Below the pieces are notes generated by a model. The model had not been told where the DNA came from. It saw nothing but the letters and a program-made list of their open reading frames with translations, and did no database searches. A DNA stretch of 64,000 bases from Anthoceros angustus (lineage: Eukaryota > Plantae > Anthocerotophyta), in the NCBI GenBank assembly GCA_010909165.1, contig MU008196.1:558001-622000 (forward strand). The letters run 5' to 3'. The translations under genes and the position numbers were made by a program. Below, piece after piece: positions 7,923 through 64,000 of this stretch (the stretch's first letter is position 1; each line of letters starts with the position of its first letter).

Positions 7923-7989
7923 CGCAGGGCCGTGCAGCTCGGAATTGCATGATCCGATCGCGGCGAGGGCGAACGCCGCAGAGCCGCGA

Positions 7990-8560: not shown

Positions 8561-11355
8561 GACTCCATACACCACATGACCGCGGGATTGTGCGCGCCGG
8601 CTGTCCATCGGTGGCCACAAGATGGTGACTGCCACGGTAGGCTGCCCACCCCTATGGTGCCTCCCNCACCATCTCTCCAGCCTCGCCTCCCACATCCGTG
8701 TTCCCCACCATCTACGTTGCCTCCAAAGATCACTTGACTATGACGCCTGCTTGCCACCTTCCTCCATCTTCCTTCTCCACTAGTATCTCGTGCCTTCCTT
8801 CCCCGACATGGCCTTCACCTTCCACCGCCTTTCCTTCCCTTCTTCCCCGCAAGTCATGCACACACATCACTTAGAGCTCACGCCCCCATATATCACCACG
8901 CCGCACCAACCGCCAACTCCTCATTCTCCACCCAACCTCCATCGCATAACCGCTCACAGCCATGTACACTCCACCACGCCCATGTACCAGACAACACGGC
9001 AATGACGCTGCCTAGTGGCTTACCGCCAACCGCCTCCATCAATTCTGTGTAGTGGCAATGTAGTCTATGTCCGTCTCCACCTCATCATCCGCCATCTCCA
9101 CATCCGCCTCGCCGCGCTTCCCCATCATTGCCGCCACCGTGTCCTTCTCCTCACCGCCCTCCCGACCATCATATGCACGCTGCCTTGGCCCCCGCAACCG
9201 CCTCCTCCAAGAGACCAGCCCACTCCTGTGGCAGCAGTTTCCTCCTCCACAGCATCCTCCTCCCACGTTGTTGGGGTTATCCATCGCCACCGAACAAGGT
9301 CCACAAGACCAATGGCCTCTCTCTCGCCAGCCACACGGCCGGCCTCTTGGGCAGCACCACCATGCTCCTCCCGATCACCACAGCCTCCTGACTCACGCCA
9401 AATTCCTCCTCCCTCCCGATGTCACGGCCTGCATTCCTCCTCCGAAAGTTTTGATTCTCTCTGCAGAAGTGCCCAGGTTAGCTCCCACCTATTAGAGACA
9501 CCCACTTGCGGCCGCTTTCTCTCAAAGATCGCCTCTTGGCGCAGACTCCACCGCTGGAAGTTGCTCCCTCCAAGACCCGACACCTCTCTCGCCGCCCGCT
9601 CCACGCGATGATCATCCACCTCCACTTCACCGAATCCGCATTCTCCACATGCCCACCTCACTTGTCGCGCTAGGACCATCCTTCACTGCTTCCATCCAAG
9701 CTGCCAGTTTTGTCCGGCATTGAGTCTCGTGCTCTTGGTCATTTCCCGGCTTCCAGCACCTCACCATCGACCGAAGCGCCAAGCCGTCTATGGGCCCCCT
9801 CTCCTACTTAGGGCCACCACCTTTTTTGGGCGCCGACATCCAATGATGCACGGATTTGTTGGAGAAACTCCAGTGCGATCTTGTGGATCAGCGGCACGCG
9901 GAGAAGATCCTGGAGGGGAAGTTGTCCCAAACGGAGGAAAGAGCAGTCCGGGCAACCACCCATGCCATGAGTTTTCAATTATTCTTATGGCAAAACTGGG
10001 GACTATATATGGCATGCATGGAGGAAAGGCATACGTGGACAAGGAAGGTTTCGTGTTTGTGTACAGGCCAAGGAAGGTGGCATGGCAAGGCAAGAGCCAA
10101 CCGGTGGCATGGCATGCCACGTGATCCCCTTCTTCACACCCGCCCCCATTGGTTTGGGACGTTGACTTTGAATATTTGGCTGAAGCTCCTTGCAAAGAGG
10201 AACCCTTGGTAGGCGGTTCCTTCCCCTTGCCCTTCCCTGCTCGAGGCATGGCGCCTTTCAACTCCAAGTGCTTCTAAGGCAGTAAATTACTTCCCAAGTG
10301 CTGTCAAAGGAGGAAGCTACTTCCCAATCCCAAGCTTCCTCTCGTCCTCTTGGGGTCTCACCTTGAGGCTCTCCTGGTGGGGAACAATCACACAATCAGG
10401 AAGTTAGCTCTGGCTCACTCCCCGCCACCTTCTTCTCTTCTTCTCCTCTCTCGCAGAGGTGCCTCCCCTCAGTTTGCCTGCGCTTTCCTGGCGACTCTCC
10501 TCTTCAATCCGTGGTTACCCTCCGTCGCCTGAAGCGCCGCCCTCGCGTCCACTGTTCCTCCCAGCACTCAACACTCGCGGTGCTTCGCAAGTCTTGCTCG
10601 AAAAGCTCCTCAGCACATGATATGTTCCTCCTCTCCCTCTCACTCCAGCTAGGGTTTCTTCCTCCGCTTCAGCTCGCGCGTAGCCTCCCTCTCCTCCATG
10701 CTCAGTGGTGGTGGCGATGGTCTTTCTTCTCTTCTCTTACGCTCCAGCTTCAACTCCAGTTCTTCATGAGGTGGGGACGCAACAGCCTTCTCCAACTGCC
10801 TTCTCATCGGACTCCATGGCCTCCAATTGCCATTTGGTCCCTGCTCTTCTCTCTGTCATCTCTTGGGCCTTATTTGCCCGGACTTCCTCCTGACATGCCC
10901 ACAAGGAGGCTGCTAGTTCCCTAGCCCCCTTCAAATCCACACGGCTGAGTGCTTCACAAGCACTCAGCAAGTCTTCCCCTTCCCTGCAGCAGTGAGGCTC
11001 GCCCCACCGGTGGGGTGCCAGCCCTACGTGGCTGCTCCCCCCTTGCAGTAGCACCGCCTACCTACTGGTGGTGGTGGTACTGACGGTAGTCACCGCACCC
11101 ACCGGGTAGTGCCTCCCTACGGGTAGGCTGCCCAGGGTGCCTCTTCCCAGGGCACCCACGAGATAGTGGGAACTCCTCCCACCCTGGGTCGTCACCCCTA
11201 CCGTGGTAGTCCTCCTCTCATAGACTACCACCTAGCCCTCCTTGGCCGGATCTTGCTCTTCTCCTCCTCCACCGCTCTTGTGGAAAGGCCTCCCACTCAA
11301 GGCAACCTTGTTGTCCACCTCCTCAGCCCTGGTCACAGCCTGAGAAGGTGGTGCA
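8560..11355 (-). mobile_element. Inverted, diverged family A internal fragment (coiled-coil region)
   Basis: ORF 10764-11054(-) LLSACEALSRVDLKGARELAASLWACQEEV...KAQEMTERRAGTKWQLEAMESDEKA is nearly identical to 3887-4147(+). The reverse complement running down from ~11350 aligns to ~3405 onward. Confidence 0.7.
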
Positions 11356-29018: not shown

Positions 29019-32000
29019 CTACGAGCTGTTCACATGTGCTGATTCTTCTGGTGCTGCCTCCACTGCCACAGGTGAAGCCTCTAGTGCAGCACCTTCTGTA
29101 GTCAGCACCTCTTGCTCCACAATCACCTCATGTTTGTCCGCTCCACTTCTCTCTGCTGCCAGTGGAGCTCTGACTTCAGGAAACATATCATCTTGAAGCC
29201 AAGGCGAAATAGCCTGAACCTGAGGCCAGCTCTGCTCCAACAAGCTGTCGCCTCCGAGAGTGCTTCTCTGCATGAGGACTCCTCTGGTATGCATCACAAG
29301 CAGCATGTTCTTCAAGATCTCAGGCACTTGTTCTTGCAGCCTGTCGCTAGCTTTGCCCCTGAGCCTAAGTTTCAGGTACTTTTCCATATGACCCAGAACA
29401 GCGAGCCAGAGTGTCCCGAAGCTAGGTAGGGCAGACAGATGGTCAAGAAAATGAAGAAAACTTTTTGATATGAATTTCATCGCTTGATACAGAGTTCCTT
29501 CCATGCTCCGAAACTCTTTTGAGGACTGCCTACTTACTATGTCCAGTAGATCATCTAGCAAAGGAAAGACAATCTGGTCAAAGCAATGAGCCAAAACTGC
29601 TGGGCTGGCGTTTAGGTCATCTGCTGCGATTATACACCGTTGCAAAGCTGACAAGGCATAATTCCTGACTTCCTCCCTGTGATCCAGACATACTTTCCTT
29701 AACCCTTGAGCAAGTCGAAGCCACATATCTGCAAGCTCTTGAATCACCTTTCCATTTTCACCTACTTCCTCAGCTGGGTTAGCATCAGAATTAGCTACTT
29801 TCCTCCACTGGACAAGACAGGTGACTGACTCTGAAAGAAGATCAAGTGCGGATCGACTGTCATTGCCACCAGTCCTGGATTCAGCAAAGGCCCTTGCTGC
29901 ATCAAGGCAAAGAACATAGTTGGCGGGCAGCATGTGTGCACCCTCAGCCATTATAAAAACAAGAGCTTCAAATCCAGGATCCGACGCCTCTGGATGCCGA
30001 GCAGTCATTGTCAGTAAAGATGCTACTGTTCTCCATCCAGCCATGGATTTAATATGTCCAGCATTGGCTCTGACGAGCTGCATTACCTCCTGGGTGATTC
30101 GCTCACAAAACTCGTCAGCAACGCGGGCATCAAGTTTCAAAATCAGCTGCAGAGATCGCAGAAGCTCTTCAGACAGGTTTTCCTTATACGGAAGCAGCCG
30201 TTGGCAAATGTGAAGTAGACCAAAAACAGCCTTCTCCACAAGGGGGGTAGGAGTAGTTGCAGTCTGGACAATGCCAGCCATGTGCTCATAGACACCCTGC
30301 CAAAGCAACATTATCCGGTCACGATTATTGAGCGTGATGGCAATTAAAAGCTCTAAGCAGAAAACAGCGGTATCTTCATCCTCTGGTGTGGTTCCTTTCG
30401 TTGACCTTCCTGCAGCCCCAATGAGAGCCTTAGCTAGCTCCAAAAGTGAATCCGCTTGCAAAAATCTGCTATCTGTGAAAATATTGTCAATATGACAAGC
30501 TTCAATGGTACGAAGGGTTCGTTGATGAGCTGCCAACTGTTGCTCTGTAGGCTGCAATCTAGGCTCCTCACTTTCCAGAGAAAGAAGCTGACTAAAACGA
30601 CTCATTAAACCAGATGACTTCCGACGCGCACCACCAGTAGGTGCAGGCAATAGGGCCTGGTTGCCCGGGAAAACTTTTCCATGTGCTGATGAAGTCATGC
30701 CATCTGTCTCATCAGCAATATCACTGGCAACACGTGATGCTAAGAGACCTAACTTATGCAAACGGAGAATGCAATCCAGAATATTACGCCATCCACCACG
30801 AATATAGTCACCAAACTTATTGGCAATGGTGAACACAGCAAGTGCAGCCATTCGAGCCTTTGTATCCCCTCAAAGGCAATGAGGCTCTTCCACAGACGTG
30901 GTGGGATTGAGTAGAGTTGTGAACTTGCATAGGGACACAGCCAAGTCATCTAGCACATCCTCAAGGCGATAGCTTGCAGCAATCTTTGCCACTGCCAGGA
31001 AACCATCTACACATGCCTGTTGCACCTCCTCTTCTTCAGCATGGTCGAAGACAACAGAAATAGCAGCAATCGTTGGACCCGAGATCATAGCAAACATATC
31101 ATTGTCTAGGAGTTGAGCCATATCACACTGAATATAAGGAGAAGTTGTTCGAGACCTACGCATCAAATCCACCCACCGGCTGTAGGTCATATCACCAGAT
31201 GCTGTACCATGGTCATAAGATACTTTGATTTCATCCCGTACAATTGAGTGGTACAGATCTAACAGCATCTCACGAGGTAGATCTTCCCCACCATTGATGC
31301 TCCGATTATTCTTGATGAAGTCTTCTTCACTCATCTTCCGTTTAACTCGAACATTGTGCTGGTCTGTGTTGAGCATAATGACAGAGTAAGCAAGTACATA
31401 AGCAGCATCCTTATTAGCCAATATCCCAGAGGACTGTTCATAGTATCTCTCTGCAAATGCATCAAGCACCCTGGATATCTTCTGAGCCTCTCCTGGTGGC
31501 CAGCTCTCGAGGAAATGCATAGGCACTATCTAGACTCATATCAGTGAAGTCAAAAGTTCGAGCAAACTCAACCAGCACATCGAGGCAAAACTCATCAGGA
31601 TCACCCAGGAAATCTCCTAATAGGCTCTTATCCAGACCCGACGTGTACCTGAAGAAGCATGCCACACTTCGCGGATCAAGCTTCTCTGGCAAAAAACGGA
31701 TCACTTGAAGAAACTCAAGACCCTTCTTAGGATCTCTGTTAAAATGATCAGCACCAATCATTAGCCTACGTTTTATGTATTTGCATCGTCGAACAAACTG
31801 AACCCAACACTGTGGATCTTCGTAGTTCTCACACTGCACTGTCCAGAACGGCACATACTCCTGACCTTCTTCAATTGCTGGCCCAGAATAAGGGACTGAA
31901 GCACCGTCAACTCTGTCAGCCATACTATGAATCACAGCGAAGCCCTCAAGTGCAAGAACATGCATGGCAGAAAGTGGACAGTTCACTGGAAATGCACTCT

Positions 32001-33710
32001 TGACAGCAAGTTCCCAAGATCTTCAAACAAATTACTGCACGTGATGTCACAGTCAAAGTTGGCGTACATTTCAACCATGAACCTAGGTTGACGACAAAAG
32101 TCAACCAGGGCTTCCATAGCCACTTCCTGTTCTTGGTACGTCGCCCCATACCTCCCTGTGCCAGACGGATTATCACGTAAGAGAAAAAGCTTCCAGTTGA
32201 AGCTTGACATGGCACCGAAGATGATGGTACAGATTAAGGACTATACTGCATGCCATGGATAAAACCAAAGGCTGACGAGAGAGTCCCATCTGGATAAGGT
32301 TACGGCAGAGCTCATCCTGCACAAGGGCCAGCAGCTTGGGGTGCTGACCAAATGATTGCCCACCCAATTCCAGCGCAGAGTTGATAAGCCCAAGTGCAAA
32401 AGTGGGACATCCTCATCACTAGCTAAAACACTTTGACCAGGGCCCTGGGATCCCCACATTCAAGAGTGAGCACAAAAAATGAAAATCTCCACCATGCACA
32501 TCACTCCATAGGACTCCCTTGACGCAGCATCACCTTGATGACCATCCATTTTGTTCACTGCCCCCCAGTCTTGGAAATTACTACCATCAGACAAAGCTAA
32601 CCCAGGTGACGATGGTGATAGCTGAGGAGGAAGCTTCTGTGTTCCATCTTCTAAAGAGGGACCATCGTTAGAGCCTGTGCTGGACAAGCCCAGAACATTT
32701 GCCCCATTCGCCTGTAAACCAGAAACGGTTCCCTCTGTTTGCAACTCTCCCTGCACAAAAGCAAGGTTCCAACGTCAGTTGTGACAGCCCTACTTCTGCC
32801 CACCGCTTGCGTACAAGACATTAAGGTGTAGCATCACTCACGGAAGCGGAGCTGTTGCACGAGGATTGCTCAAACTGACTGCTTGGAGTCGTTCCAGAGT
32901 GGACACTGACAAGAGGCAATCTTGAGAAGATGGTCCTAACAAGCTCATGCATGGCATGGCGGGCAGTGCGCTGCAAGAGCTCGCCTTTTGAACCAGCCTG
33001 ATGCACAACTCTAAAGCAGGTGTTCACCACATTCAGCACATCACCATTACTAAGAACAGCACCCGCACCAGTTTTAACACATGCCAGCAGGACTTGCAGG
33101 ATCTTCATGAGGACAATTTCCTCAGAGGCTGGGTCAGTGACCTCGAAACGGCAGCTAGTGACACAGTCCACTATGGAATGCATCGCTTCACCAACGTGTG
33201 CCGTCCTTGCATTGAACACTTGCAAAGTCAGAATCTTGTACACAGCAGAAAGAGCAACGCCTGTGATAGGAGCTCCTGCCAAGTAACGACCAGCAGTGTC
33301 AATCGAATCCACAGGCACAGCAGCAACGGCTGTCTTTGACAACACAAAAGAAGTTCAAGGATGACGATGCAGGTACCTGTCTCATCGGAACGGATAACCT
33401 CAAGAAAGGGTGAAAGGTAAATATTGGGGCTAATGGTCTGCCAGGGCTGGTGCCAGCTGAAGATGCGGCGTCGTAGCATCTTGAGTGCATGCATGAGTGA
33501 GTGTTCGTGCTGATCGTCATGCCCGGCCATGTAGCGAGTGCCCCACCGCGCATTCCGGCGCATCACAGCCAACACAGCCCCAATCTCTGCATTCACCATA
33601 CAAGCCAATGTTCCACCATCCCCTGTTGCGGCAACCCCTGTATTCGAATGACTGGTCTCAAGGATGCCGCCTCCAGGCTGCAGGTCCGACACAAGACTAC
33701 CGCATGCCAT
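29019..33710 (-). CDS. GNOM: GNOM-like GBF1-type ARF guanine-nucleotide exchange factor (Sec7 domain)
   Basis: N-terminus LACMVNAEIGAVLAVMRRNARWG and SPFLEVIRSDETG/APITGVALSAVYKIL. Sec7 motifs PGEAQKISRVLDAFAERYY and YSVIMLNTDQHN. HDS region AVFTIANKFGDYIRGGWRNILDCILRLHKLGLL. Predicted GT-AG introns 33276-33376 and 32751-32841 restore frame. The remaining frameshifts are 1-3 nt losses, often in homopolymers. Confidence 0.95.
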
Positions 33711-35949: not shown

Positions 35950-36190
35950 GGTCAATAACCACCACGTCCGCCACCGAAACCTCCACCATGGACAAAAAAA
36001 CATGTCGTGACCGATGAGCAATATGTTCTAAGAATGTACCTCGCCCTCCTAAGCCATGTAGCCAAGTCATGGCGAGCTATGGCAAACATGACATTGGGGA
36101 TAGCGTCGTAGGTGGCGATGTGATGACCCCCATAGGGATAACGAGCAAGGTGTATCCCCGAGTCATCGAGGTAGAGCCGCACTCGCAAGT
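35950..36190 (-). mobile_element. CRE-like (RLE) non-LTR retrotransposon, C-terminal Zn-finger fragment
   Basis: LDDSGIHLARYPYGGHHIATYDAIPNVMFAIAR parallels MDTFGMHRAHCLNGGQRIATHDVIRNVMFAM at 48630-48730. Confidence 0.6.
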
Positions 36191-36539
36191 AAGAAGGGAA
36201 GATGCCACAAGCTAGAGCAGTGCCGGGCGACTAATCGCATCGCAGCGGTGAAGGTGGTTGCGCGCCTCGTATACATGGATATGAGCCATGTCAAGCGCTC
36301 ATGTTCTTACCAAAACAAGAGCGAAGCCGAACTCTTGTGGACCTAGGGATAGAGGAGTCCAAGAGGACGAAGTGGAAAGCCTAGCCGAGTTGCTTCTCAA
36401 GCAACAACGCCTGCAACCCCCTGAAACCATCGAAGATGAACGTCGAGAAAGGAGGAAAATCTCGCCGAGCATCTCCAGAAAGCATTTCCTTGGCCTGCCT
36501 CAAGGAAATTTATAGAGGCCTAGAGGATGAAGCGAGAGG

Positions 36540-37274: not shown

Positions 37275-37410
37275 TAGCTGGCAAAGGGAAAGGGGGCAAT
37301 TCTCCGCACCTCGCGGTGGTGGTGAAGACAAAATAGGTGGTAGCCGCCATTGCGACCATCACACAACAACATGAGTGCCGGATCATCAATTCTCCGCACA
37401 CCGACATGGA
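37275..37410 (-). CDS. PHD finger at the integrase C-terminus
   Basis: Across two 1-nt shifts it reads C-R-V-C-RRIDDPALMLL-C-DG-(R)-NGGY-H-LF-C-L...C, fitting the C4HC3 spacing with one Cys substituted. Confidence 0.8.
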
Positions 37411-37479
37411 TAGTCAACCGGAGGGACCCATTCTTTGTGACCATTGGGGTCCAAGTTGGGCAGATGGCATGGGGCACAA

Positions 37480-38520
37480 TTCTTCATGGTCCGTTGTAAC
37501 CCTTGCCATCGACCCCTCCAGTGACAACACTCCATTTCTACGCACCTCTCGCATCAGCACATGTCTGCGGTGCTAGGCTCCAAAGTATCCCTGTGTTTGC
37601 ATTTGTAGATAGACATAGTCCTGGCTGAAATTTCACGACCTTAGGTGGAAACTCCCACTCTGATGAGCATACGAGTGTATCACGATCTTGAGCTATCTTG
37701 AGATTGGCCATAGCCATTGGCATCACCGCCTAATAAGGCTGCGTTCCCCAATAGCCTTGGCCCTATGGTGGGTCATCCAAACTCAACACTTCTTGCATCA
37801 TGAGCAATGGCCACAGGTGGTCGCTCTCTTCCAAACAAAAGGAAAGGTGAAAGTTGGCCGTTGATGCATGCTTGCTCATCCACAGCCCATAGCAATGTAT
37901 GGCAAAGCCAAGTCCCAATCATCTTGGGCTTGGTGAGGCATAGCTTTCTCAACGCTTTGTTTGATGGTGCACCATCCTCTCAACAAATGCCCTTGTGGGT
38001 GATCACGGCTTGTCGCGGTGGTCAATAAGTGCACCATCCGAGATCAAACTCACCTCGAATTGACTCCACTGTGCTGAGACACTCAGACTGCTCCTCACTA
38101 AGCACATTGTGCAAAATGCTTGGGATGTGCTTGGTGATGTCTTGTCCGGAAGTGCTACATTCCACCCCGCAAAATGTTCAATCATGACCATGATGTAAAC
38201 ATTGCCACGTGGTGTGCGTGGAAATTCTCGAGTCACGGGACCACCTAAAGAAGAGTCCCATGATGGGCAGCTGCGCTCAGAATGAGGGTTGCTAAAGAAG
38301 CCTTGACCACATTGAGCACACTGCCACCTCCTCGCTTTTGGTGAACATGCCATGCTGGAAATGTGATGGAGGCAGATCAGGTGCGCTTCACACCAAAATG
38401 GCCTAGATCTTCATGCACCCTATGGATAAGCCTCAGACGATCCTGTGGTGGAGGCACCAAACGCTTAGCCCGTTGTACCTCCTCGGCGGTACCCATCCCT
38501 CCACTCATAACAAGCTCTCT
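37480..38520 (-). CDS. Integrase (HHCC, DDE core, C-terminal domain), frameshifted
   Basis: RVHEDLGHFGVKRT; CAQC; GP..EFPRTPRGNVYIMVMIEHF; VERMV.TIKQALRK; KFQPG.YVYL...NCAPCHLPNLDP. Confidence 0.85.
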
Positions 38521-38719
38521 GACCTTCTCTTCGATGTGCATCCAAGCTAGCATCCATTTGCCCTCTTCACATGCAATGTGGCCTTCACTCACACATCCTT
38601 GTGTGGCTGGCAAATTAACCGCACATGCATTCGCAAAGGCAGCATTAGGAGTTTCCTCCATGTCACCGTCTGGCGAGCTTCGGTGTCCTTCTCTGTCAGG
38701 GTTGCGTGGTATGTCGCAT

Positions 38720-39000
38720 TCGTGCTTGGTTCCAGCCGATGGACCACCTCAAACTCATAGTCCTCAAGAATCATTGCCCACCTTGCGAGTTTCCCGCTCG
38801 TATTAGACGCCCATTTCAAGGGCGATGGTCTCACCAAAATTAACATTCGCCCATACAGATAAGGGCGAAAATGGCGATAGCCCACAGTGCAAGCAACTCC
38901 CTTCATATAGGAGTAATTTGCTTACGCATGTTGCTTCTTGAAGCATAGGCAATGACCCTCTCGACCTTGACATCCACTTGCTTGACTCCACCCAAAATGC
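38720..39000 (-). CDS. RNase H of Gypsy pol
   Basis: HFRPYLYGR...PLKW...SGKLARWAMILEDYEFEVVHR. Confidence 0.85.
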
Positions 39001-39099: not shown

Positions 39100-39900
39100 A
39101 ATCCGGTTGTCTCCTTGGATCATTCAAGGGCTTAGCAATGCTGCTAAAGGCCGAACATAGACCCTATAGTAATTGCACAACCCTAAAAAGCCCTAAGGCA
39201 GGAGCACATTAGTTGGAGCTTGGATCATTGGATGGCCTGCACCTTAGCAAAGATGTGGTGTTATGCCATCTGGCGGTCCGATGCCCAAGATATGCTGCTG
39301 TCCATGGCAAATTCACACTTGGTGGATGACATGTTAGGCGGGCCTTTGCGACCTCTGGAACAAATCCTCCGGATGCATCGGATGAGTGTCAAAGTCCACA
39401 CTATGGACCAATACATCATCTATGTAACACAAAAGATGAGGCGCCTGCCGATTCTTGTCCATGACTCTTTGGAAAGTCACTGGTGCATTCTTGAACCCAA
39501 AAGGCATGACCAGCCACTCCCACAGCTGGTGGGCTCCATGAAATGCTGTCTTGGGAATGTCCTCCTCTTGCCCGGCACATTGAAGCCATGTAGTCCGATG
39601 TAGAAAAGAACTTAGGCGTCCGTCGCGTCAAACAACTCCTCTGGTGTAGGCATAGGATACCTATCCGTAGGCTGTTGCGCATTGATGGGACGATAGTCCC
39701 CACATTCGTTTTCGGTCAAAGCCTGTCCTTCTTAGGTGGAAGAACGATTGCTGCGTGTCGAACTAGAGGGCCTAATTAGCCCACCTTATACAACTCACAG
39801 CGGCGTCCACGGTTTCCCATTCTGGCTCAACTTTGTGCTCTGCGCTGTAGATAGGCTCGATGGTGTTGAGCTTAATCACGAAGGTCATGACATTGCACCT
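39100..39900 (-). CDS. Reverse transcriptase of Gypsy pol
   Basis: DYRPINAQQPTDRYPMPTPEEL; EDIPKTAFH; MPFGFKNAP; CYIDDVLVHS (YIDD at 39415-39426). Confidence 0.9.
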
Positions 39901-40214
39901 CTTCAAATCCTTCATCTTGAAAGCAAAACAATCAGTATTGTAAAAGCAAAGTATCTTTGCCTACGCCTAAATCCGGTGAGGACCCATGGTCCAACCAAAA
40001 GTTTCCGTAGTAGGTGAAGCCTTGGCAGCCGTTGACAGTCCTGGTCCTAGATCCACCAAGGTAAACAAGTTTGGGAAACATGTGCTCCACCCCATGCGTC
40101 GGTGATAGGACCGATGGCAAAGCGAGATGGCAAGTGATGACGATCGGATGACAAGAAAAAGTACTAGTATGAACAGCAGTGGGTCCCGCGCCTCGAAGTC
40201 TGGTGAGCATCGAA

Positions 40215-41095
40215 AGCCAAGCAAGGTGACCCGGCCGGTCGCCGACATCCATGGCACGGCCAAGTGCTGCAAACCTCTGAGCCCTGGAAGCCTTGGGTGC
40301 AGCCGTGCTGTGGGTGTGGAGACCCATCACCCGTTCCCTCTCCTCCACTATAGGTTCCTCCCACACCTTGGTATCTTCATTAAAAAGCATACCGGGACCG
40401 TTATTCCTATAAGCATAGGAGCCGGGATAGTGACCACGTGGCGTGTGTTCTCCTTAGCCGGGTGTGTTGGTAGGAAACCAAGGGGCTCTCTCCTTGGCTG
40501 CAACAGGCTTGGGAGTATGATTGTCATCCAGGACATCCTGTAGGAGACGGGTGGGCTCCATTTCTTTGCTTTGTAAAAAAAGTGCGAGGATAGATAAGGG
40601 ACCAAATTGGTCCAATAATTCTGTGAGCATAGCTGCCCACAGGCTGCATCCATGGTGAAGGAGGTCCAATGATGTGTTGGATCACGACCATGTCTTGGCG
40701 ATTGTGGCCGAGCATCCAATTGGGCTGGTGTGTTCTCCAGATAAGCCACTTGAGGATGTTGATCCTGGCCAAAGTACTTGCACGGATCCTAAATAAGCCT
40801 GAGCGGTTATCTTGCAACCCGCTCCTTTCCGGCTTGGGATAGGCCTTGGCACTCCATCTCGCAAATCCACATGCCCAAGGGCTTGACGTGTGCTTGGATG
40901 TCTTGAATGTTCATGGGGAGTGTCAAACATGCTCTTGCTTGCGAAAATTGCTGGAAAGCTACTGCTGCAGTGCACCGATGTGCGGCATATGCCTATGGAC
41001 AAACATCACAAGATGTACGAGAGGCGTGATGCCACACCTCAACAACGCCTCAAGACCCGGTGCATAGGCCCCAAACACTCCACCAAGGTAATACC
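40215..41095 (-). CDS. C5-cytosine DNA methyltransferase domain inside pol (frameshifted)
   Basis: Motifs in canonical order: I GITLVE.FG...GLEALLRCGI (~41095-41030); III/IV LGHVDL..GWECQGLSQAG (Cys 40849-40851); V GLQDNRSGLF; VI YLENTP (~40735); VIII DAA..GSYAHR..YWTNL (~40600-40650); IX/X EPIVEERERVMG...QRFAALGRAMD (~40350-40245). Confidence 0.85.
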
Positions 41096-41149: not shown

Positions 41150-44100
41150 CCTCCCCGGGTCTGAAGGCTTCTGCAGCACTTGCATAACACGAGCAACTGT
41201 TTCTTGAGCTTCTTGCATGCTCCTTACTATGGGAGGCTCGAGAATGGGTGGATCGAGACACGAGAGGACAGGTGTGTTCCCAACACATCTCCTCATGAGC
41301 ATGTGAGAGGATGTCCTCATCCTCTCACACTCGATAACCATGCTTGAGCGATGTGGTGGTAATAGGCGGCCCCATCCCCAAGGTGGATCTGCACCATACA
41401 GCTGTCTTTCCACCGTAGCCTCGGTACTGTCACCCATGCAAATCAAGGTAGGTAGGCAATTGCCCCCCACAATCGGCCTAAAAAGGCTGTGCATCCGATT
41501 GTCAATTGAGACTCGAGGAAGCAATTCTGTCCAACAGATGTCATAATTAGTGGCACAGTGACTAGACAAGCTTAAGCTCATCTGCTGTGTTGGGCTTCAA
41601 AGTGATCTTGGTTGGTGTTTCCCCACAGCTCAAGCCCCATTTGTCGCGAATGTTCCATGGGGAAGGCTTCTCCCTTCAAGCGGCCGTAACCTTCCCTATG
41701 ATCCGCTTGTGCTCTTTCCAACAACAGGTGCAAATCCATTTACCGACATGGCTAGCCCGATTGTCCACAAGCACGTTACTTACGTGGCCTTGCGCGATTT
41801 GTGGGTATACGATTGGTAGACCCCGACTTTCCCAAGCCAATTGTGCACGCAGTCTTGCCGGAAACAAGTGAATCCAGTGTCACCATGATGGCGCAATCAT
41901 CGACCAACGATTACCTCACCGTGGCTGCGACATGGTGTCCAAGTTAGCCTCTTCAATTCCTACATCCCAGAGGTGAGCAAGGTATGTACACCCTCTTCAA
42001 CAACTCCTTGCGCGTTAACATGGTCGTCAGCTGTTGGACTTGTGTGTGTCTAGCTTATGATCTGGCTAGGAACCAGTCGGGTCCTTTGCTCCTCTTGATC
42101 CCCTTTAGGTAGATGATTTGACCCTCTCACCTTGGTATCTTTGGACTCGATGGAAGTTCTTTGGAAAGACACAGGCATTGCGGCTCTAGCTCCTTCTTGG
42201 CGTGTGGTGGATGATGCGTCTAAGAGGTGACCCGGCCAGTTGTTGTGGCCCGCCACTGGACGAATCAACACGCTTAGACCTTTGCCATGCAATGGTTCAG
42301 CCTTGGCTCCTTGTGTGTTGCATAAGCCTCCATGATCGCCCATAATCTTCACCAAGATCATCGATGTCCGTGATTCTGAGTTCCATAGCATTGGCGGGCT
42401 TAGCATTCAAGCTTGCCGCCAAAGTGCTGACGGTAGTCGGTCGACCATGGCTGTCTCGGGCGATCATTTGAGCAGCAATACCTTAGCCTCGCGCTTGACT
42501 TGGCTCTTCTTGGCGAGATTTCCTCTGTAGCCTCTGCCGAGGCACTCCACATGCAGTTGCTCCAGTTCAATAGTGATGGTAGGCTTAGTGGCGGCACTAG
42601 AGTCTATCCTGTTTTCCAAGGTCGCCGCTCGGATACTTTGAAAAACAAAGCGCCTCCACGTGACGGTTTCTTGCAATGCGATGTAAGGAGTCGACTAAAT
42701 CCATGCGAGGCAAAGGTGTTCAACGCCACACTTACAAAGTGTGGTGGCGATGTGTGACCTTGGGCGGCTTGGACTCCCTTGTTGACGACTGCGTTATTCT
42801 TGAACTACCCTTCCACGAAAACATTTGGTAATGGTGGAAAGCCTTGGTATCTTTGAGCTTGTCTGTGAAGGTTTCTGCAGCACTTGCATAACACGAGCAA
42901 TCGCTTTCTTGAGCTTGCCGCGCGCTCCGGGCTGGGAGGCCTGGGAATGGTCGGATATCGAGACCGAGAGGACATGTGTTCCCAACACATCTCCTCATGA
43001 GCATGTGAGAGGATGTCCTCATCCTTCCACACTCCTAACCATGCTTGAGCGCGAGCACTGTGGTAATAGGGGAACGCCCATCCCCAAGGCGGATCCGCAC
43101 CATACAGCCTGCCTTTCCACAGCCTGTGCAGCCCATGCAAATCCAAGGTAGGTAGGCACCGCTTCCCTCGCTAACTGCCTAAAAGGCCTGCTCGTCTGGG
43201 CTGTTGAGACTCGGAGGAAAGAAATTCGCCCCAACAGGATGTCATAATTGGTGGCACCGTGACTAGACAACGACCGCCAAGCTCACCTCATCTGTGTTGG
43301 GCTTCAAAGTGATCTTGATCGTTGGACTTTCTTTCACAGCTCAATCGCCTCAAGCCGTAAGGCGAATGTTCCATGGGGAAGGCTTCAACGCACTTCTAGC
43401 CGCACAGCAGCCTAACCTATGATCACCGGCCGTTTCCCCGTGTCCAACAACACCTGGGTGCAAATCCATTTACCAAAGACATGGCTAGCCCGATTGTCCA
43501 CAAGCACGTTACTTTACCGTGGGCCTTGCGCGATTTGTGGGTCAGACGATTGGTAGACCACGACTTTCCCAAGCCAATTGTGCAGGCCTTGCCGGAAACA
43601 AGTGAATCACCGACCATGATGGTTTTGCAATCATCGCACCAACAAGACCTCACCGTGGAGACGCAGCATGGTGTCCAAGTTAGCCTCTTCAATTCCTACA
43701 TCCAGGGCCGAGCAAGGTGCTGTACACCCTCTTCTTCAACTCCTGCGCTTAACACCATGGTCGCGCAATCGAGCGGCTGCTCACTTTGTGTGTCTAGCTA
43801 TGACACGGCTAGGAACCCGGTCAGTCCTTTGCTCCACTTGATCCCCTTCAGGTAGATGATCTGACCCTCTCACTGGTATGCTGGACTCTGATGGAAGTTG
43901 CTGGAAAGACCTGGGCATTGCAGCTCTAGCTCCTCGACGCGGTGGTGACAGTGTCGCTCTAAGAGGTGACCCGGCCAGTTTGGTAACAGACATCGCCTCG
44001 ACGAATCAACTCGCTTAGACCTTTGCCATGCAATGGTTCAGCCTTGGACTGCTCCTTGTGTGTTGCATAAGCCTCCATGACTCGTCCATAATCTTCACCA

Positions 44101-44620
44101 AGATCATCGATGTCCGTGATTCTGAGTTCCATAGCATTGGCGGGCTTAGCATTCAAGCTTGCCGCCAAAGTGCTGACGGTAGTCGGTCGACCATGGCTGT
44201 CTCGGGCGATCATTTGAGCAGCAATACCTTAGCCTCGCGCTTGACTTGGCTCTTCTTGGCGAGATTTCCTCTGTAGCCTCTGCCGAGGCACTCCACATGC
44301 AGTTGCTCCAGTTCAATAGTGATGGTAGGCTTAGTGGCGGCACTAGAGTCTATCCTGTTTTCCAAGGTCGCCGCTCGGATACTTTGAAAACAAAGCGCCT
44401 CCACGTGACGGTTTCTTGCAATGCGATGTAAGGAGTCGACTAAATCCATGCGAGGCAAAGGTGTTCAACGCCACACTTACAAAGTGTGGTGGCGATGTGT
44501 GACCTTGGGCGGCTTGGACTCCCTTGTTGACGACTGCGTTATTCTTGAACTACCCTTCCACGAAAACATTTGTCGGTAATGGTGGAAAGCCTTGGTATCT
44601 TTGAGCTTGTCTGTGAAAAC
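41150..44620 (-). repeat. ~1.74-kb tandem duplication of the gag-knuckle/protease/linker segment
   Basis: 41150-42860 and 42880-44620 are colinear, and 42290-42860 is near-identical to 44040-44610. The junction at ~42865 has TCTG(T)GAAG microhomology. Confidence 0.85.
41480..41780 (-). CDS. Aspartic protease (second copy at ~43220-43510)
   Basis: VLVD(N)(R)ASHV resembles the LVD(S/T)GAS active site. C-terminal ATNYDILLG seen in the duplicate copy. Confidence 0.65.
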
Positions 44621-46589: not shown

Positions 46590-48750
46590 TTGGGTGTCCC
46601 CTTTGGTGATCTCGACTTTGTCAAGAGCTTTTTGGATTAGTCCTTAGCGGATGACCTTTCCCACATCGAAGACCTTCGTTTGCTGGAGGATCCATATGTG
46701 GCTTTAGGCATTCTCTCCTCATGCTTTGCCAAACGCCCAGATTACCTTATCCGCACATTGCCTCCTTCTCCATTTCTTCTCCCGCGTGTAAAGGTCTCGA
46801 GAAGAAGATTATGAGTGTCTTGGGAGACATTCTAGGCCTTGGGGCTTTAGTGTCCGCAAGCAGTACAAGTGACAAGCATCCTTAGCTTATGGTAGGATAG
46901 TCTAGTTTTCATGGAGGAATACTTGCCGGTGTGGTTTTTGGCGGTGGGCTTTGTACACCTGCTTTAGCCTCGCTTGCTTCACGACAAGACCTCTTTGGAG
47001 GACTGTATCGTGTTGAAGAGAGAACCCTCCTTTCAAGTGACCTTGAGATAAGCTTAGAACGTATTATTATCTGACAAGCAAAGTAGCTTTTCCTCCTTTC
47101 ATGACCTTCCTCAACGATGGTTTAGGGTTGCGCATCCTTTGCTTCGACAAACAACCGCCAGCCTAATCCATCTTTTGGACCCTCGATTCCGAAGATACAA
47201 TAGACCGCCTTGCTCTAGTTCTAGGAAGGGCACAAGAGCTTTTGGATTAGTCCTTAGCGGATGACCTTTCCCACATCAAGACCTTCGCTTTGGAGGATCC
47301 ATATGTGGCTTTAGGCATTCTCTCCTCATGCTTTGCCAAACGCCCAGATTACCTTATCCGCACATTGCCTCCTTCTCCATTTCTTCTCCCGCGTGTAAAG
47401 GTCTCGAGAAGAAGATTATGAGTGTCTTGGGAGACATTCTAGGCCTTGGGGCTTTCGAGTGTCCAGCAAGCAATCTGGCTCATCGGCAAGCATCCTTACC
47501 GGTAGCTTATGGCGGGATAGGTCTAGTTTTCATGGAGGAATACTTGCCGGTGGTGTTTTTGGGCAGCTGGGCTTTGTACACCTCTGCTTTAGCCTCGCGT
47601 TTCTTGCTTCACGACAAGACCTCTTTGGAGGACTTTGTATCAGGTGTTGAAGAGAGAACCCTCCCTTTTCAAGTGACCTTGAGACAAGCTAGAGACATGT
47701 TATCTACGGAAGCAAAGTAGCTTTTCCCTCCTTTCATGACCTTCCTCAACGATGGTTTAGGGTTGCGCATCCTTTGCTTCGACAAACAACCGCCAGCCTA
47801 ATCCATCTTTTGGACCCTCGATTCCGAAGATACAATAGACCGCCTTGCTCTAGTTCTAGGAAGGGCACAAGAGCTTTTGGATTAGTCCTTAGCGGATGAC
47901 CTTTCCCACATCGAAGACCTTCGTTTGCTGGAGGATCCATATGTGGCTTTAGGCATTCTCTCCTCATGCTTTGCCAAACGCCCGCATTACCTTATACTTT
48001 TGTTGCCTCCTTCTCCATTTCTTCCCGCGGTAAAAGGTCTAGAAGAAGATTATGAGTGTCTTGGGAGACACTAGGCCTTGGGGCTTTTTCAGTGTCCAGA
48101 GCCAACTGCAATCCGGCAAGCATCCTTCACCCGAGCTTATGGCTGGATAGGTCTAGTTTTCATGGAGGAATACTTCTTGCGATTGGTGTTTTTGGGCACC
48201 GGGCTTTGTAACCTCACGCTTTAGCCTCGCTTTCTTCACGACAAGACCCTTTGGAGGACTTTGTATCAAAGGTGTTGAAGAGAGAACCCTCCCTTTTCAA
48301 GTGACCTTGAGACAAGCTAGAGACATGTTATCTACGGAAGCAAAGTAGCTTTTCCCTCCTTTCATGACCTTCCTCAACGATGGTTTGAGGGTTGCAGCAT
48401 GTAGCAAACAACCGCCAGCCTAATCCATCTTTTTGGACCCTTCGATTCCAAGGAATACAATAGACCGTCTTTGCTCTAGTTCTAGGAAGGGCACAAGAGC
48501 TTCGCCATTGACTCATCCATGCATACAAGAATTTCACATCGCACCTACAACCTTCACTACAACAATGCGCTTTCGTCTGGGCTTGGTTCAGCCAGTGGCT
48601 TCCTCACTTCTCACCTATGAATGTGGCTCTGCCATGGACACATTTGGGATGCATCGTGCACATTGTCTTAATGGGGGTCAACGTATTGCCACCCATGATG
48701 TCATTCGTAACGTTATGTTTGCAATGACTTGTGAAAGTGGTAATATGGCT
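46590..48750 (+). mobile_element. CRE-like non-LTR retrotransposon post-RT region and CCHC finger, with a ~620-bp triplicated segment
   Basis: LGVPFGDLDFVKSFLD; LAHRQASLPVAYGGIGL; MRFRLGLVQP...ECG..MDTFGMHRAHCLNGGQRIATHDVIRNV. Repeat starts at ~46624, ~47235 and ~47869. Truncated at 48750 by family B. Confidence 0.75.
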
Positions 48751-58276: not shown

Positions 58277-59950
58277 ATCACATCTTGGATAATGCATATG
58301 GTTAAATTAGCATCGCCCGCAAATTTGCGGCGTGACACGCCCTTGACGTGAACATGTGATTGTGAATCATACACCCCACCACATGGACTAGAATAGCCTT
58401 CCTTTAGCTCCTTAGGCCATCTAAGTATATGCGGTAAGGATGTTTTTTTCTGATCCATACCATCGATACATAATAACATGTACTTGTGAGGCTCCGTGTA
58501 TCCTTTCGTTCGATGTTGTGTCAACTTCTTCCGCTCCTCCATAAGCTTTATGCGATGTTTGTTCAATGCCTCCTGATATATATCTGCTATACAACCAAAT
58601 GTCATGTCAGTGTTCATCAATGACATATACCATCATTCCACGACCAACGACCCTCCCCACTAATGCCTCATTTCAAATGCAATAGATGAAGGGGTCGACT
58701 CCATTATAAGGCTGGCGTCTAGGCGATTGTCCATTGTAGCGGCCAAGGGGCACTGACCCTAAACGCCCCTCGAGAGGGTCAACCCCTAAACGACAAACCT
58801 AGGGTTCCGGCCGTTGTATGGTCCCGGCATAGCGAGGCCCTAAAGGGTCCTCCACTCTAGGGCGCCGAAAAGTCAAGGCCATAAAATGTCAAGGCGAAGT
58901 GTCCACCGCCGGCTCATGCGCCTTCAATTCAAACATGCGCTGCAGCCGCGCCAACCCCTACCCCCATCCTCCCTCCTCCTCTTCCCATCCCCCTTCCACC
59001 CTTCCACTGGGAGCTGCGCCTCATCTCCTCCTCACTCGAGGCCCCGATGCTGGCGCCTTCCTCCTCGCATGTCGCCCTCATCTCCTCCCCCGAGGGCGCT
59101 GCATGCCGACGCCTCCTCATCTCCTCCCCGGGGAGGCGCCGCATGCCGCGCACTCTCTCCTCCCTCCACACTTGAGGCCGCTTAGAAACATGCCCGCCTC
59201 GACCAAGGGCCGTACCGATCGTACATCTGACCAAGGGTCAACATCCACCATCACAACATACCACTGTTCGACATCAGATGGCCCACCTCGCTGTGACGGC
59301 CAACCTGTGCCTCTTTTATACCATGCCGGAAAAACGGCGTACAGCGATGAGCATAGCTTGATCTGTCCGCGATCCAGTGCTCCGGATGTTGAACTTTAGA
59401 CCGGCGCGGAGAGAACATGTTGAAAATCAATTGGATTTCAATATCTTCATGCGCTTCAAGTTTTGGTTCTATAGTCTCGTAAAAGCACGACTAAATATAT
59501 CGCACTCGCTTTGCTCCATGCCACATTTGTATTGTGTCCACACTTCTAGCTTGGTGAAAGTGTCGGGAAGATTGTAGACTTCAACATTAGGCAGCCGCTC
59601 TGCCAATTGCAGAAATGTTGCATCCATCCATGCAATAGCGCCCAATGCATAAGATGATTTCACCCGGGGGTTTGGCTTGCTACCATCCCATGGTGAATTC
59701 AACAGTACTCTGCCCTTCACCTCCTCGTACCTTTCCGACCCTATACAATACACCCTTCCAAGGATTTCGTGCAACACTTGATTGAACCTGCCTTCGTAAA
59801 AGCATGCACTGCCTTTTCCTTTCGATCCATGGTCGCCTTATAAGGGTCTCTAAATGTGTCTCCTCATCACAAAACTGGATAAGCATGTTTTTCATGTGGA
59901 AATCATATGGCGCCATGGCCCATGCCGTTGGCCATGGAAAAAACCATATG
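58277..59950 (-). mobile_element. Sola/DUF7869-like DNA transposase fragment, probably intron-containing, cut by the family A LTR
   Basis: Upstream piece: VC.KSFRRVYCIGSERY; AWMDATF..LAERLPN..VYNLPDTFTKLEVW; KI.K...FSTC. Downstream piece: KHRIKLMEERKKLTQHR...PHKYMLLCIDGMDQKKTSLPH...GDANLTI. A CAG acceptor is plausible at ~58583. Confidence 0.55.
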
Positions 59951-62795
59951 AAAATAATATCCTCAATGTGTATGTATTTTTATTTTTAGTTTCTATGTGT
60001 TCTACATTATTTATGTTTGAGTCCTACAAAGAGCTCATATGTTACTCATGAAAGGACAACATGCTCATGTTATAAATGTCATTCAGTGTCTATGTAGTTT
60101 AAATATTTCAATATATAGGTGCTCTTATATGGAATCTCTTATGAATCTACGTAAAATGAATATAAAAACAACATAAAAATAATCACATCCCTAAATTTTA
60201 TGCCCTTCATACCAGTCTTATATGAATATTTATAAGCTAAATTTTAAAATTTTAAAATAATTAAATATTTTTACTATATGAAAAATGTCTAATAATATAA
60301 AAACATGGATAAGTACATCCAATAAAATTCATATGTATTTTAATACCCTGTATCATGTGTAAAATAATATAGAGAGCATGTAGATAGGGTCCACACGGTC
60401 GGCCATGAAAAGAGGGTATGAATATCATATCCTGTCATAAATGTCATTCCTTGTAAAGTCTTAGTACCCATTTGCTTTTGAGTACTACAAAGAACTTGTA
60501 AAATACTCATGAAGCTACAAGTATCCTTCTATTTTGTGTGTCATGCTAAATGCATTTACTTTCTTTATATCAAAATATATGTACGCTAATATGAAATCTG
60601 TATGGACTTATGTGAAAATAGATATACACATCATACGCGAATTGCAATGATTTGTATATACCTTTCACAATTCCTTTCTGAATATCTAATACAATAACAC
60701 CCCCTTTACAGCGAGGTGGGGCAGTCACGCCAAAACATCACTGACACCAAAGACTAGGCCTCCAAGTAGCCCGCCGTCCTTCCACGGACGACTTGCAACA
60801 AGACATCCGCCACCGCTATTTATTCCAAAGAAGAGTCAACAAGAATACATGAGAGATCGGAGAGCTCCCCATCTTTGCCTAAGCTAGGAGCTTAGCCTCT
60901 CCTCGATCTCCTCCTCAGCCTCTCCTCTAGCACGCCACACTCTAGGCACCAAAGTCCTATCCTCACAAGAGTGTAGCTCCCAAGTGCTAGGATCCTTCTA
61001 GACATGCTCACACTCTAGGCTCCCAAGGCCTTTAGGCTCCAAAGTCCTATCCTCAAGAGTGTAGCTCCCCATGCTAGGATCACAAGATATCTCTAGGGCT
61101 AGCCTCATCTCCTTATATAGGAGGCTTACATCATTTCCAAAGTAAGCTAAAAGCGGACTTTCTTCCTTAAGCCCTAAGCTAAGTCTTACCACCACTACTT
61201 ACAACTTACTAACTAGATCCATGCAATAGCGCCTAATGCATAAGATGATTTCACCGGGTTTGGCTTGCTACCATCCCATGGTGAATTCAACGATCTACGC
61301 CCTTCACCTCCTCGTACCTTTCCGACCCTATGCAATACACCCTTCTGAAGGATTTCAGGCAACACTTGATTGGAACCGGTGCCTTCAGAAAAGTACAGAC
61401 TCTGTCTTTTCCTTTCGATCCATGGTCAGGCCTTACAAGGGTCTCTAAATGTGTCTCCTCATCACAAAACTGGATAAGCATGTTTTTCATGTGGAAATCA
61501 TATGGCGCCATGGCCCATGCCGTTGGCCATGGAAAAAACCATATGAAAATAATATCCTCAATGTGTATGTATTTTTATTTTTAGTTTCTATGTGTTCTAC
61601 ATTATTTATGTTTGAGTCCTACAAAGAGCTCATATGTTACTCATGAAAGGACAACATGCTCATGTTATAAATGTCATTCAGTGTCTATGTAGTTTAAATA
61701 TTTCAATATATAGGTGCTCTTATATGGAATCTCTTATGAATCTACGTAAAAATGAATATAAAAACAACATAAAAATAATCACATCCCTAAATTTTATGCC
61801 CTTCATACCAGTCTTATATGAATATTTATAAGCTAAATTTTAAAATTTTAAAATAATTAAATATTTTTACTATATGAAAAATGTCTAATAATATAAAAAC
61901 ATGGATAAGTACATCCAATAAAATTCATATGTATTTTAAATATCATGTGTAAAATAATATAGAGCATGTAGATAGGGTCCACACTCGGCCATGAAAAGAG
62001 GGTATGAATATCATATCCTGACATAAATGTCATTCCTTGTAAAGTCTTAGTACCCATTTGCTTTTGAGTACTACAAAGAACTTGTAAAATACTCATGAAG
62101 CTACAAGTATCCTTCTATTTTGTGTGTCATGCTAAATGCATTTACTTTCTTTATATCAAAATATATGTACGCTAATATGAAATCTGTATGGACTTATGTG
62201 AAAATAGATATACATCATCTGCGATTGCAATGATTTGTATATACCTTTCACAATTCCTTTACGAATATCTAATACAATAACACCCCTTTTGAGGTGGGGC
62301 GATCCGCGATTAGCGACAAAACATCACGGACACCAAAGACTAGGCCTCCAAGTAGCCCGCCGTCCTTCCACGGACTTGCGGTCGACTTGTCTGCCCATTG
62401 CTATTTATTCCAAAGAGTCAACAAGAATACATGAGAGATCGAGAGCTCCCCATCTTTGCCTAAGCTAGGAGCTTAGCTCTCCCTCGATCTCCTCCTCAAC
62501 GCTCTCCTCTAGCACGCTCACACTCTAGGCACCAGTCCTATCCTCACAAGAGTGTAGCTCCCAAGTGCTAGGATCCTTCTAGACATGCTCACTCTAGGCT
62601 CCCAAGGCCTTTAGGCTCCAAAGTCCTATCCTCAAGAGTGTAGCTCCCATGCTAGGATCACAAGATATCTCTAGGGCTAGCCTCATCTCCTTATATAGGA
62701 GGCTTACATCATTCAAAGTAAGCTAAGCGGACTTTCTTCCTTAAGCCCTAAGCTAAGTCTTACCACCACTACTTACAACTTACTAACTAGATCCG
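59626..62795. repeat. ~1.59-kb tandem duplication (transposase 5' part, AT-rich spacer, chromovirus LTR)
   Basis: 59626-61218 is repeated as 61215-62795 with ATCC microhomology. Identical ORFs at 59854-60051 and 61449-61646. Confidence 0.85.
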
Positions 62796-62829: not shown

Positions 62830-64000
62830 CTCCCCATCGAAAAGAATCACATCCTCGATGATAGCCAACGTCGAGAGATCATCCAGATCCTTTCGAATAT
62901 CCTCTAACGTTACCCAAACCGGATCGAGATCCCACGCAACTTTACCATATCGTGGTACGATTCCACGCTTTGTAGGCACGCTACTCTCGCAAGGAATTCC
63001 TCAATTTCCGCATTCCTTGATTATCTTTGCGAACACTGTACTTCTTGTCCATGTCTTCTTTCTCTTTGCACACAAATGGTTTCGAGTGATACATGAAACA
63101 CATTGTGTGCAAAAATCCATTCAGCTAACTTGTAAGCCACTTCTCCAATGCGCTTCAAGACTACAAATGGACCACCATATCTTGGCCTTAACTTAAGAGT
63201 TAATCCTTGAGGTAATGGGAAATGCTTCAATTTCACCCATACTTTATCCCCAACGTTGAAGACAGCTTTCTCCGTGCCTATCAAAGATATTTCTTCCGAC
63301 GTGCTTGAGCCTTGGCTAAAATTCCTTTGGCAATCTCATGCCTAGCCTTCAACCGCTCAATGAATCGGCGTGGATCTCTAGTGGTAGTATCGAAAACTTC
63401 AGCATTTAGCATGGATACCATCCGGTCAATTTCCTCCCATCTCAAAAGGACTACATCCAAGAGAGGCGTATGTGTTGTTATAACAAAATTGCATCGTCTA
63501 GATGATCACCAATCCTCCGATCAATCGCACATAATGCCTTAAGTATTCTTCTTGGATTCGTTGACTCGCTCGGTTGAGCCATCGATCGGATGGAAAGTCG
63601 TGCTCATACATAATTCCACATTCAAGCATTTCATCAAATGCTGCCAAAATTCTCCTGTGAACCTTGGATCCCTGTCACTCACAATCTGCATAGGTAAGCC
63701 ATGGTACTTGTATACATACTTCTTAAACAAGTGGCTACCTCGGCCACTCTTCTTTGTAGGGATGAAATGTGCTTGTTTGGTGAATCTATCCACCACATGA
63801 TATGTACAACCATTCTTTGGTGGCAAAGGCATGATAAAATCCATAGAGATACTCTTCCAAGGTCCACTTGGAATAGGTAGTAGCAAACCTCTTGGTTTAG
63901 CTTGCTCCACCTTATCTTGCGACAAACAGACATGCCTTGACATAATCCACATATCGATACATTCCGGCCAAAAAGCCTTCCTTAGCTTCTCATAAGTGGG
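62830..64000 (-). mobile_element. Ty3/Gypsy chromovirus: integrase core, GPY/F motif and chromodomain
   Basis: PSGPWKSISMDFIMPLP...VVDRFTKQAHFIP...IVSDRDPRFTGEFW; KLRPRYGGPFVVLKRIGEVAYKL...HNVFHVS; EIEEFLA...VK.RG...WVTLEDI. Confidence 0.9.

Follow-up and report, generated by a model that had tools for sequence, protein, structure and literature searches.

Does a Ty3/Gypsy retroelement of a land plant carry a cytosine-5 (C5) DNA methyltransferase of its own within pol, and could the copy found here still make use of it? This is the question raised by the window, that is, the whole 64,000-nt stretch of Anthoceros angustus DNA that was analysed. Three-frame translation of 42300-37900, combined with Pfam searches on stop-free pieces, located the parts of a Pol on the minus strand, namely reverse transcriptase (RT), RNase H, integrase, and a PHD-like tail. 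Upstream of RT, at 41095-40220, the translation revealed methyltransferase-like motifs spread across all three frames. On sequence comparison, the identification of 41095-40220 (minus strand) as a decayed C5 DNA methyltransferase (DNMT) domain of DNMT3 type in a Ty3/Gypsy pol holds. The locus as a whole is very probably a dead, LTR-less, and internally duplicated Ty3/Gypsy copy, belonging to a family whose Pol combines a DNMT3-type C5 methyltransferase between protease and RT with a PHD finger behind the integrase. Elements of this kind are already known (KnitGypsy-Dnmt3, 2018); what is new is the host group, land plants, for which no earlier description was found in the searchable literature. 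The land-plant origin stated in the original prediction is supported by a neighbouring 610-residue ORF (29019-30851, minus strand), which encodes a GNOM/GBF1-type ARF-GEF 63-67% identical to angiosperm GNOM.

Most of the evidence comes from natural relatives of the segment. With its one long unbroken piece at the C-terminal end, window positions 39935-40453 (minus strand), a search of 1.84 billion representative proteins found 120 matches at E ≤ 1e-3 (best 2.7e-12), always through query residues ~9-70. Many of these matches were long Gypsy polyproteins, and PF00145 passed its curated cut-off in P0034, P0003, P0049, P0062, and P0035, beside RVT_1, RT_RNaseH, rve, and PHD.

Pol domains and the place of the DNMT segment among them

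The succession of RT, RNase H, and integrase on one strand is the Ty3/Gypsy order, and the tblastn matches of the relatives are collinear with it. RT-homologous sequence starts from ~39930, on the same strand as the DNMT and ~290 nt downstream of it, in agreement with the distance of ~300 nt initially predicted. The broken RT (39127-39930, minus strand), delimited by RVT_1, tblastn, and lesion count, has its Y-I-D-D box near 39400 and gave a Pfam match to RVT_1 on 39337-39627 (E 5.5e-10). A broken RNase H follows on the same strand at 38592-38969, as indicated by Pfam (RT_RNaseH on 38592-38921, E 3.7e-4, below its cut-off) and by tblastn of relatives. The integrase, also broken (37670-38469, minus strand), comprises an H2C2 zinc-binding part at 38380-38469 and then the catalytic core; Integrase_H2C2 was matched in Pfam by the piece 38380-38748 at E 0.0017, and tblastn yielded a sum E of 5.7e-20 with orf3 of L001, a contig of the ENA metagenome assembly ERZ25067493. 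The PHD-finger-like C-terminal tail of the integrase lies at 37277-37483 (minus strand), where the Pfam PHD match in the window itself has an E of 0.027 and query positions 918-975 of P0113 match the same stretch by tblastn. In the relatives, including P0035, P0049, P0011, and L001 orf3, the PHD finger PF00628 occurs at the same place with E values of 1e-8 to 1e-11. In chromoviruses, the position held here by the PHD finger is occupied by a chromodomain.

The stretch that joins DNMT to RT (39931-40243, minus strand) was found by tblastn to be homologous to the corresponding linker of the relatives, with L001 orf2 (query positions 217-261) and P0074 (query positions 167-244) matching 40068-39808. 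In Closterium sp. NIES-54, contig CASDOD010256753.1 presents a gag ORF, then a single 643-residue ORF (L007:10693-12621) that contains both PF00145 (27.3 bits) and RVT_1 (77.3 bits), and then RNase H and integrase. P0225 and P0228 hold aspartic protease and DNA_methylase within one ORF, and four contigs of ERZ25067493 (L001, L004, L005, and L006) carry protease, DNMT, RT, RNase H, integrase, and PHD in order. Because the relatives thus carry DNMT with RT, or protease with DNMT, in single ORFs and in the same order, the DNMT domain is judged from their sequences to belong to the retroelement.

The rival explanation that survives best, which we nevertheless regard as very unlikely, takes the DNMT-like segment for a host DNMT3 pseudogene, or for a separate insertion, lying beside an ordinary Gypsy pol. 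Taken alone, the window would permit such nesting, since no LTRs delimit the element and the region upstream has been rearranged by a tandem duplication. However, the closest relatives of the segment are all retroelement-borne and none is a host DNMT3 gene, the protease-DNMT and DNMT-RT fusions of the intact relatives agree with the window in strand as well as in order, and the segment has no introns and is connected to RT by a 290-nt linker homologous to that of the relatives. A DNMT domain within the Gypsy pol therefore remains the preferred reading.

The duplication concerns the gag/protease side of the element. It consists of a copy A at 41162-42869 and a copy B at 42866-44617, both on the minus strand. 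Protease-like motifs were recognised in copy A by eye only (V-D-N-R-A-S near 41770 and Y-D-I-C near 41540), and copy B contains L-L-D-T-G at 43450-43397 and Y-D-I-L-L-G. Apart from these short motifs, the frameshift-tolerant scores for protease and gag (36-55) fell inside the null range (maximum 75), and no Pfam match for gag or protease was obtained in the window. The claim that the DNMT lies between protease and RT is accordingly upheld by the order in the ORFs of intact relatives, whereas the protease of the window itself is recognisable at motif level only and is not significant. The two arms of the duplication are essentially 100% identical over their first ~540 nt (42330-42869 and 44076-44617, minus strand) and ~78% alike over the remainder, where 110 transitions, 113 transversions, and 38 small indels were counted. 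Gene conversion, a template switch from one family member to another, or an assembly join could account for this mosaic identity.

No pair of direct repeats encloses the region from 36 to 49 kb. LTRs were not found, and neither were the ends of the element. Further repeats are present in the flanks. Positions 46622-48502 hold a tandem array of about three units, each 607-638 nt long, that repeat an ORF that starts with M-L-C-Q-T-P-R-L-P-Y and has no Pfam match, and an inverted match with 65% identity connects 48351-48725 with 36079-36459, on either side of the Gypsy relic. The flanks at 36.3-36.95 kb and 46.6-48.5 kb (plus strand) had been considered by eye as fragments of non-LTR retroelements; this guess found no Pfam match and is not claimed. 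Near the end of the window, 59626-61220 and 61217-62794 form a tandem duplication with 94% identity in an A+T-richer region, close to which an integrase-like match was detected at 63548-63928 on the minus strand (P0057, E 1.2e-5).

Decay of the copy

The alignment path through the DNMT part crosses six frameshifts (near 41023, 40821, 40768, 40710, 40660, and 40589) and two in-frame stops (40993-40995 and 40454-40456) in 838 nt of the minus strand, equal to 9.5 lesions per kb. The N-terminal half of the domain has in addition suffered many small deletions. From RT to PHD, 25 frameshifts and six stops over 2305 nt amount to 13.4 per kb. By the same method, the GNOM-like host gene showed ~2 lesions per kb, with one stop and no frameshift in its 3' 2.4 kb; some frameshifts are overcalled where identity is low, yet element and host gene still differ five-fold or more. 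With lesions so much more frequent than in the host gene, and with no LTR pair found, the copy is considered dead: it is a fossil that cannot make any protein.

It had been suggested that the frameshifts may be read errors and that the copy could be intact. An intact or recently active element, with its frameshifts introduced by sequencing or assembly, appears slightly less probable still than a separate origin of the DNMT segment. In its favour, the host gene in the same window is not free of such breaks either, being interrupted by a stop in frame (30870-30872) and apparently changing frame near 31521, 32000, and 32190. Against it stand not only the excess of lesions in the element over this host gene, but also the at least eight in-frame stops that arose by substitution, the many small deletions in the N-terminal DNMT half, the lack of LTRs, and a 1.7-kb tandem duplication on the gag side, with arms that for the most part agree at only ~78%. 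Since the host gene also has a few frame breaks, some of the lesions, though not most, could be assembly errors. Read error does not rescue the copy, and any activity, such as self-methylation or mimicry, is therefore excluded for this copy, whose DNMT is broken.

The GNOM/GBF1-type gene, with the stop and apparent frame changes mentioned above, lies within 29019-32400 (minus strand); its frame breaks may represent pseudogenisation or decay, short introns, or assembly errors. Elsewhere in the window, 7800-8760 is a low-complexity region with a very high G+C content of 0.68, one ambiguous base, and long Ala/Arg/Pro-rich ORFs in several frames of both strands.

In the pol part, o/e was 0.57 for CpG and 0.69 for CWG, with an excess of TG+CA (o/e 1.40), compared with 0.44 for CpG and 1.74 for CWG in the host gene. 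The depletion of CpG and CWG fits a long-standing methylation of the element by the host in CG and CHG contexts, although this is suggestive only. The present-day role of the copy is likely to be only that of methylated repeat DNA.

Homology and type of the methyltransferase relic

Direct searches with window pieces returned little. None of five stop-free pieces reached PF00145 at E ≤ 1 in Pfam, a PDB sequence search with three window pieces gave nothing relevant, a word-indexed protein search with the C-terminal piece returned no match on account of its length window, and ESM-atlas features provided a weak pointer to PF00145 clusters that was treated as a lead only. As a check, PF00145 thus fails on the pieces of the window and succeeds on the retroelement-borne relatives, which pass the cut-off; the identification of the window DNMT accordingly rests on these relatives rather than on Pfam or PDB significance of its own.

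The relic occupies 40220-41095 (minus strand), as delimited by a family hidden Markov model (HMM), frameshift-tolerant alignment, and comparison with the relatives. At its start, the motif I region (SAM-binding loop; 41025-41095), placed by translation, alignment, and HMM positions 41-61, is degenerate; beginning near 41093, it reads F-G-A-Y-A-P-G-L-E-A-L-L-R against the family form F-G-G-x-x-A-G-L-E, and it is weak by itself (E 4.9). Motif IV with the catalytic Cys lies at 40843-40860 (HMM positions 100-146, E 0.002). The sequence G-W-E-C-Q-G announced for it does not occur literally in the window, where 40860-40843 reads E-M-E-C-Q-G followed by L-S-Q-A-G; GWECQG/D is the form of the intact relatives. 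The replacement of the usual Pro by Glu before the Cys was correctly noticed, but it is no peculiarity of this copy, the preceding residue among 36 relatives being Glu in 20, Pro in 13, Ser in two, and Asp in one. Translation, alignment, and HMM also placed motif VI, L-E-N-T with the ENV-type glutamate, at 40729-40740, and the motif VIII region, M-D-A-A-C ... N-Y-W-T-N-L, at 40603-40653. The R-x-R of motif VIII is absent from the reading path of the window (S-Q-N-Y-W), and the S-Y-A-H-R stretch of the family is found in another frame. Motifs IX-X (40244-40429), which gave both the best protein match (E 2.7e-12) and the best match to the family HMM (E 2.4e-25), are the sole well-kept stretch, with Y-P-G-S-Y-A-Y-R ... 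E-R-E-R-V-M-G-L ... L-G-R-A-M-D-V. Motifs I, IV, VI, VIII, IX, and X, all on the minus strand, follow the canonical unrearranged order, which is that of DNMT3 and not that of DRM.

The family HMM, built from the domains of 34 relatives, was run on the entire window, divided into 2798 six-frame segments. The four highest-ranking matches all fell within 40992-39935 (minus strand) and in the order of the model, covering HMM positions 100-146 (E 0.0017), 173-233 (E 0.12), 237-279 (E 2.3e-4), and 291-352 (E 2.4e-25). Other DNMT-like spots on the minus strand (10767-11057, 60573-60737, and 62159-62323) had E values of 0.3-3 and unconvincing alignments, and were judged to be chance. When aligned to the natural relative P0049:680-1000, the window could be followed from 41057 to 40220 over 276 aligned positions with 41% identity. 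Together with the collinear HMM matches, this alignment substantiates the original prediction of C5 methyltransferase motifs in canonical order on the strand of RT, and the coordinates given for them proved right. An independent test was offered by the N-terminal half (motifs I-VIII), which had played no part in finding the relatives. Frameshift-tolerant local alignment of this half of two natural relatives to 41160-40560 (minus strand) scored 83 and 103. By comparison, 204 real 600-nt segments from elsewhere in the window had a mean of 30.7 (sd 4-5) and none scored above 54, and 150 shuffles reached at most 45; the two scores thus correspond to z = 13-16. That the motifs arose by chance in decayed sequence, without methyltransferase homology, is next to impossible: the Pfam and PDB searches with single pieces did find nothing, but this reading is refuted by the C-terminal piece, with its E values of 2.7e-12 in the protein library and 2.4e-25 with the family HMM, and by an independent N-terminal half lying 13-16 standard deviations above its controls.

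The type of methyltransferase was determined on the family rather than on the fossil. An alignment of the DNMT domains of 29 relatives (A1) was converted into a profile and searched against PDB, where it matched DNMT3A (5.7e-24), DNMT3B/3C, plant DRM (2e-12), M.HhaI (1e-7), and DNMT2, in that order. The AlphaFold model of P0049:660-1000, a natural relative and not the broken window copy, had a mean pLDDT of 95.7, and its best 50 Foldseek matches were all DNMT3A/B/C (E 1.8e-18, TM 0.80-0.84 by target). Because both the A1 profile and the predicted structure match DNMT3A/B best, the family domain is assigned to the DNMT3 type. Across A1, the catalytic Cys, the Glu of motif VI, and several residues of motifs VIII-X are invariant; relative to DNMT3A, the family domain is longer by ~55 residues between motifs VIII and IX.

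Plant DNMT3/DRM and the host DNMT3A/3B of animals are hence the closest counterparts of the family domain in sequence and fold, and DNMT3 is likewise unrearranged in motif order. Differently from these host enzymes, the family domain has neither PWWP nor ADD, is embedded in a retroelement polyprotein, and in about half of the family has Glu where Pro usually precedes the catalytic Cys.

The Gypsy-DNMT3 family and its biological meaning

Two domain layouts were distinguished among the relatives. The first, with the order RT-RNaseH-DNMT-integrase-PHD, is that of the majority of relatives P0001-P0120, including those of chlorophytes; the second, protease-DNMT-RT-RNaseH-integrase-PHD, is shared by the window, Closterium, and the ENA contigs. 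In the DNMT tree, layout 1 formed one moderately supported cluster and layout 2 several lineages outside it, and the window stood on a long branch without a resolved position; its subfamily is thus proposed on the basis of domain order, not of phylogeny. The named members of the family are Closterium (Zygnematophyceae), a close algal relative of land plants, and the Chlorophyta Haematococcus lacustris and Cymbomonas tetramitiformis, most others being metagenomic. A word-indexed search with P0093 returned only ENA and JGI proteins and no named land-plant relative.

The layout of the window recurs in gene models of Closterium sp. NIES-53/54 (CAI7782159.1, CAI7912910.1, and CAI7913481.1) and in the contigs of ERZ25067493, with gag, protease, DNMT, RT, RNase H, and integrase, as well as PHD in the ENA contigs. 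Their motif IV is G-W-E-C-Q-G and they share 52-54% identity with the window over the C-terminal part of the DNMT, but their ORFs are long or complete, unlike those of the shattered window copy. No paper describing these elements was found. Among four ENA copies, the DNMT dN/dS was 0.10-0.25 where dS was not saturated, which it often was; selection appears to act on the DNMT module in these closest relatives of the window. Haematococcus lacustris KAJ9527864.1 and Cymbomonas tetramitiformis KAK3250090.1 belong to the same DNMT family, with 39-50% identity among A1 domains. The chlorophyte and metagenomic polyproteins have the same PHD tail and include both the EC and the PC variant of motif IV, but they differ in bearing the DNMT between RNase H and integrase rather than between protease and RT.

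The closest published system is KnitGypsy-Dnmt3 of Klebsormidium nitens, a DNMT3 carried within a Gypsy pol and showing Ka/Ks < 0.2 between copies, which was explained as an independent acquisition within the Klebsormidium lineage (de Mendoza et al., 2018, Nat Commun 9:1341, PMC5890265). The K. nitens domain produced no methylation in yeast, a result its authors deemed inconclusive, and the paper does not mention a PHD finger (PMC5890265). By the published description, both systems have an unrearranged DNMT3-type domain inside the Gypsy Pol of a streptophyte, keep the key catalytic residues, and show low ratios (Ka/Ks < 0.2 there, against 0.10-0.25 in the closest relatives of the window). They differ in host, a charophyte alga there and a land plant here, in that the window copy is dead, and in the DIRS-like repeat arrangement of K. 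nitens, which was not found in the window. In L001, just downstream of pol, 5501-5706 and 6823-7028 form an exact 206-nt direct repeat, 1322 nt apart; this repeat may belong to an LTR, or to terminal repeats arranged in DIRS-like fashion as reported for K. nitens. More distant parallels are SymbioDIRS-Dnmt3 and SymbioLINE-Dnmt, which are likewise retrotransposons with a captured cytosine methyltransferase but pertain to the DIRS and LINE classes, to another eukaryotic supergroup, and to an independent capture; the SymbioDIRS-Dnmt3 domains of Symbiodinium methylated CG de novo in yeast (PMC5890265). A 2026 preprint refers in passing to 'streptophytes (Gypsy-DNMT3)', and no report of Gypsy-DNMT3 from land plants was found in the searchable literature, which is thin on subscription journals.

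In working members of the family, the DNMT module would be translated within Pol and presumably released by the protease of the element. Once freed, it would methylate cytosines in a SAM-dependent manner, in the cDNA of the element, in the integrated copy, or in host DNA. A methyltransferase function of the family is inferred; its domain is conserved in the relatives, as seen in the invariant residues, the dN/dS of about 0.1-0.25, and a predicted DNMT3 fold.

In its broadest form, the interpretation would be that Gypsy-DNMT3 is an old family of the green lineage, distributed over chlorophytes, zygnematophytes, and at least one land plant, rather than a capture private to Klebsormidium, that it exists in two domain orders, with Glu-Cys in about half of its members and an integrase-PHD tail, and that copies with an intact methyltransferase persist in the genome of the window or of a close relative. 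Taken jointly, these statements are possible and rather doubtful; if they were true, the action of a transposon-borne de novo methyltransferase could be tested directly in a plant.

Retrotransposons with a DNMT3 of their own invert the usual picture in which the host silences the transposon. The fossil described here extends the known range of Gypsy-DNMT3 to a land plant, Klebsormidium being the sole described example in the searchable literature, and the searches made for it reveal a wide spread of relatives among green algae, Closterium included, and point to intact natural copies as candidates for assay.
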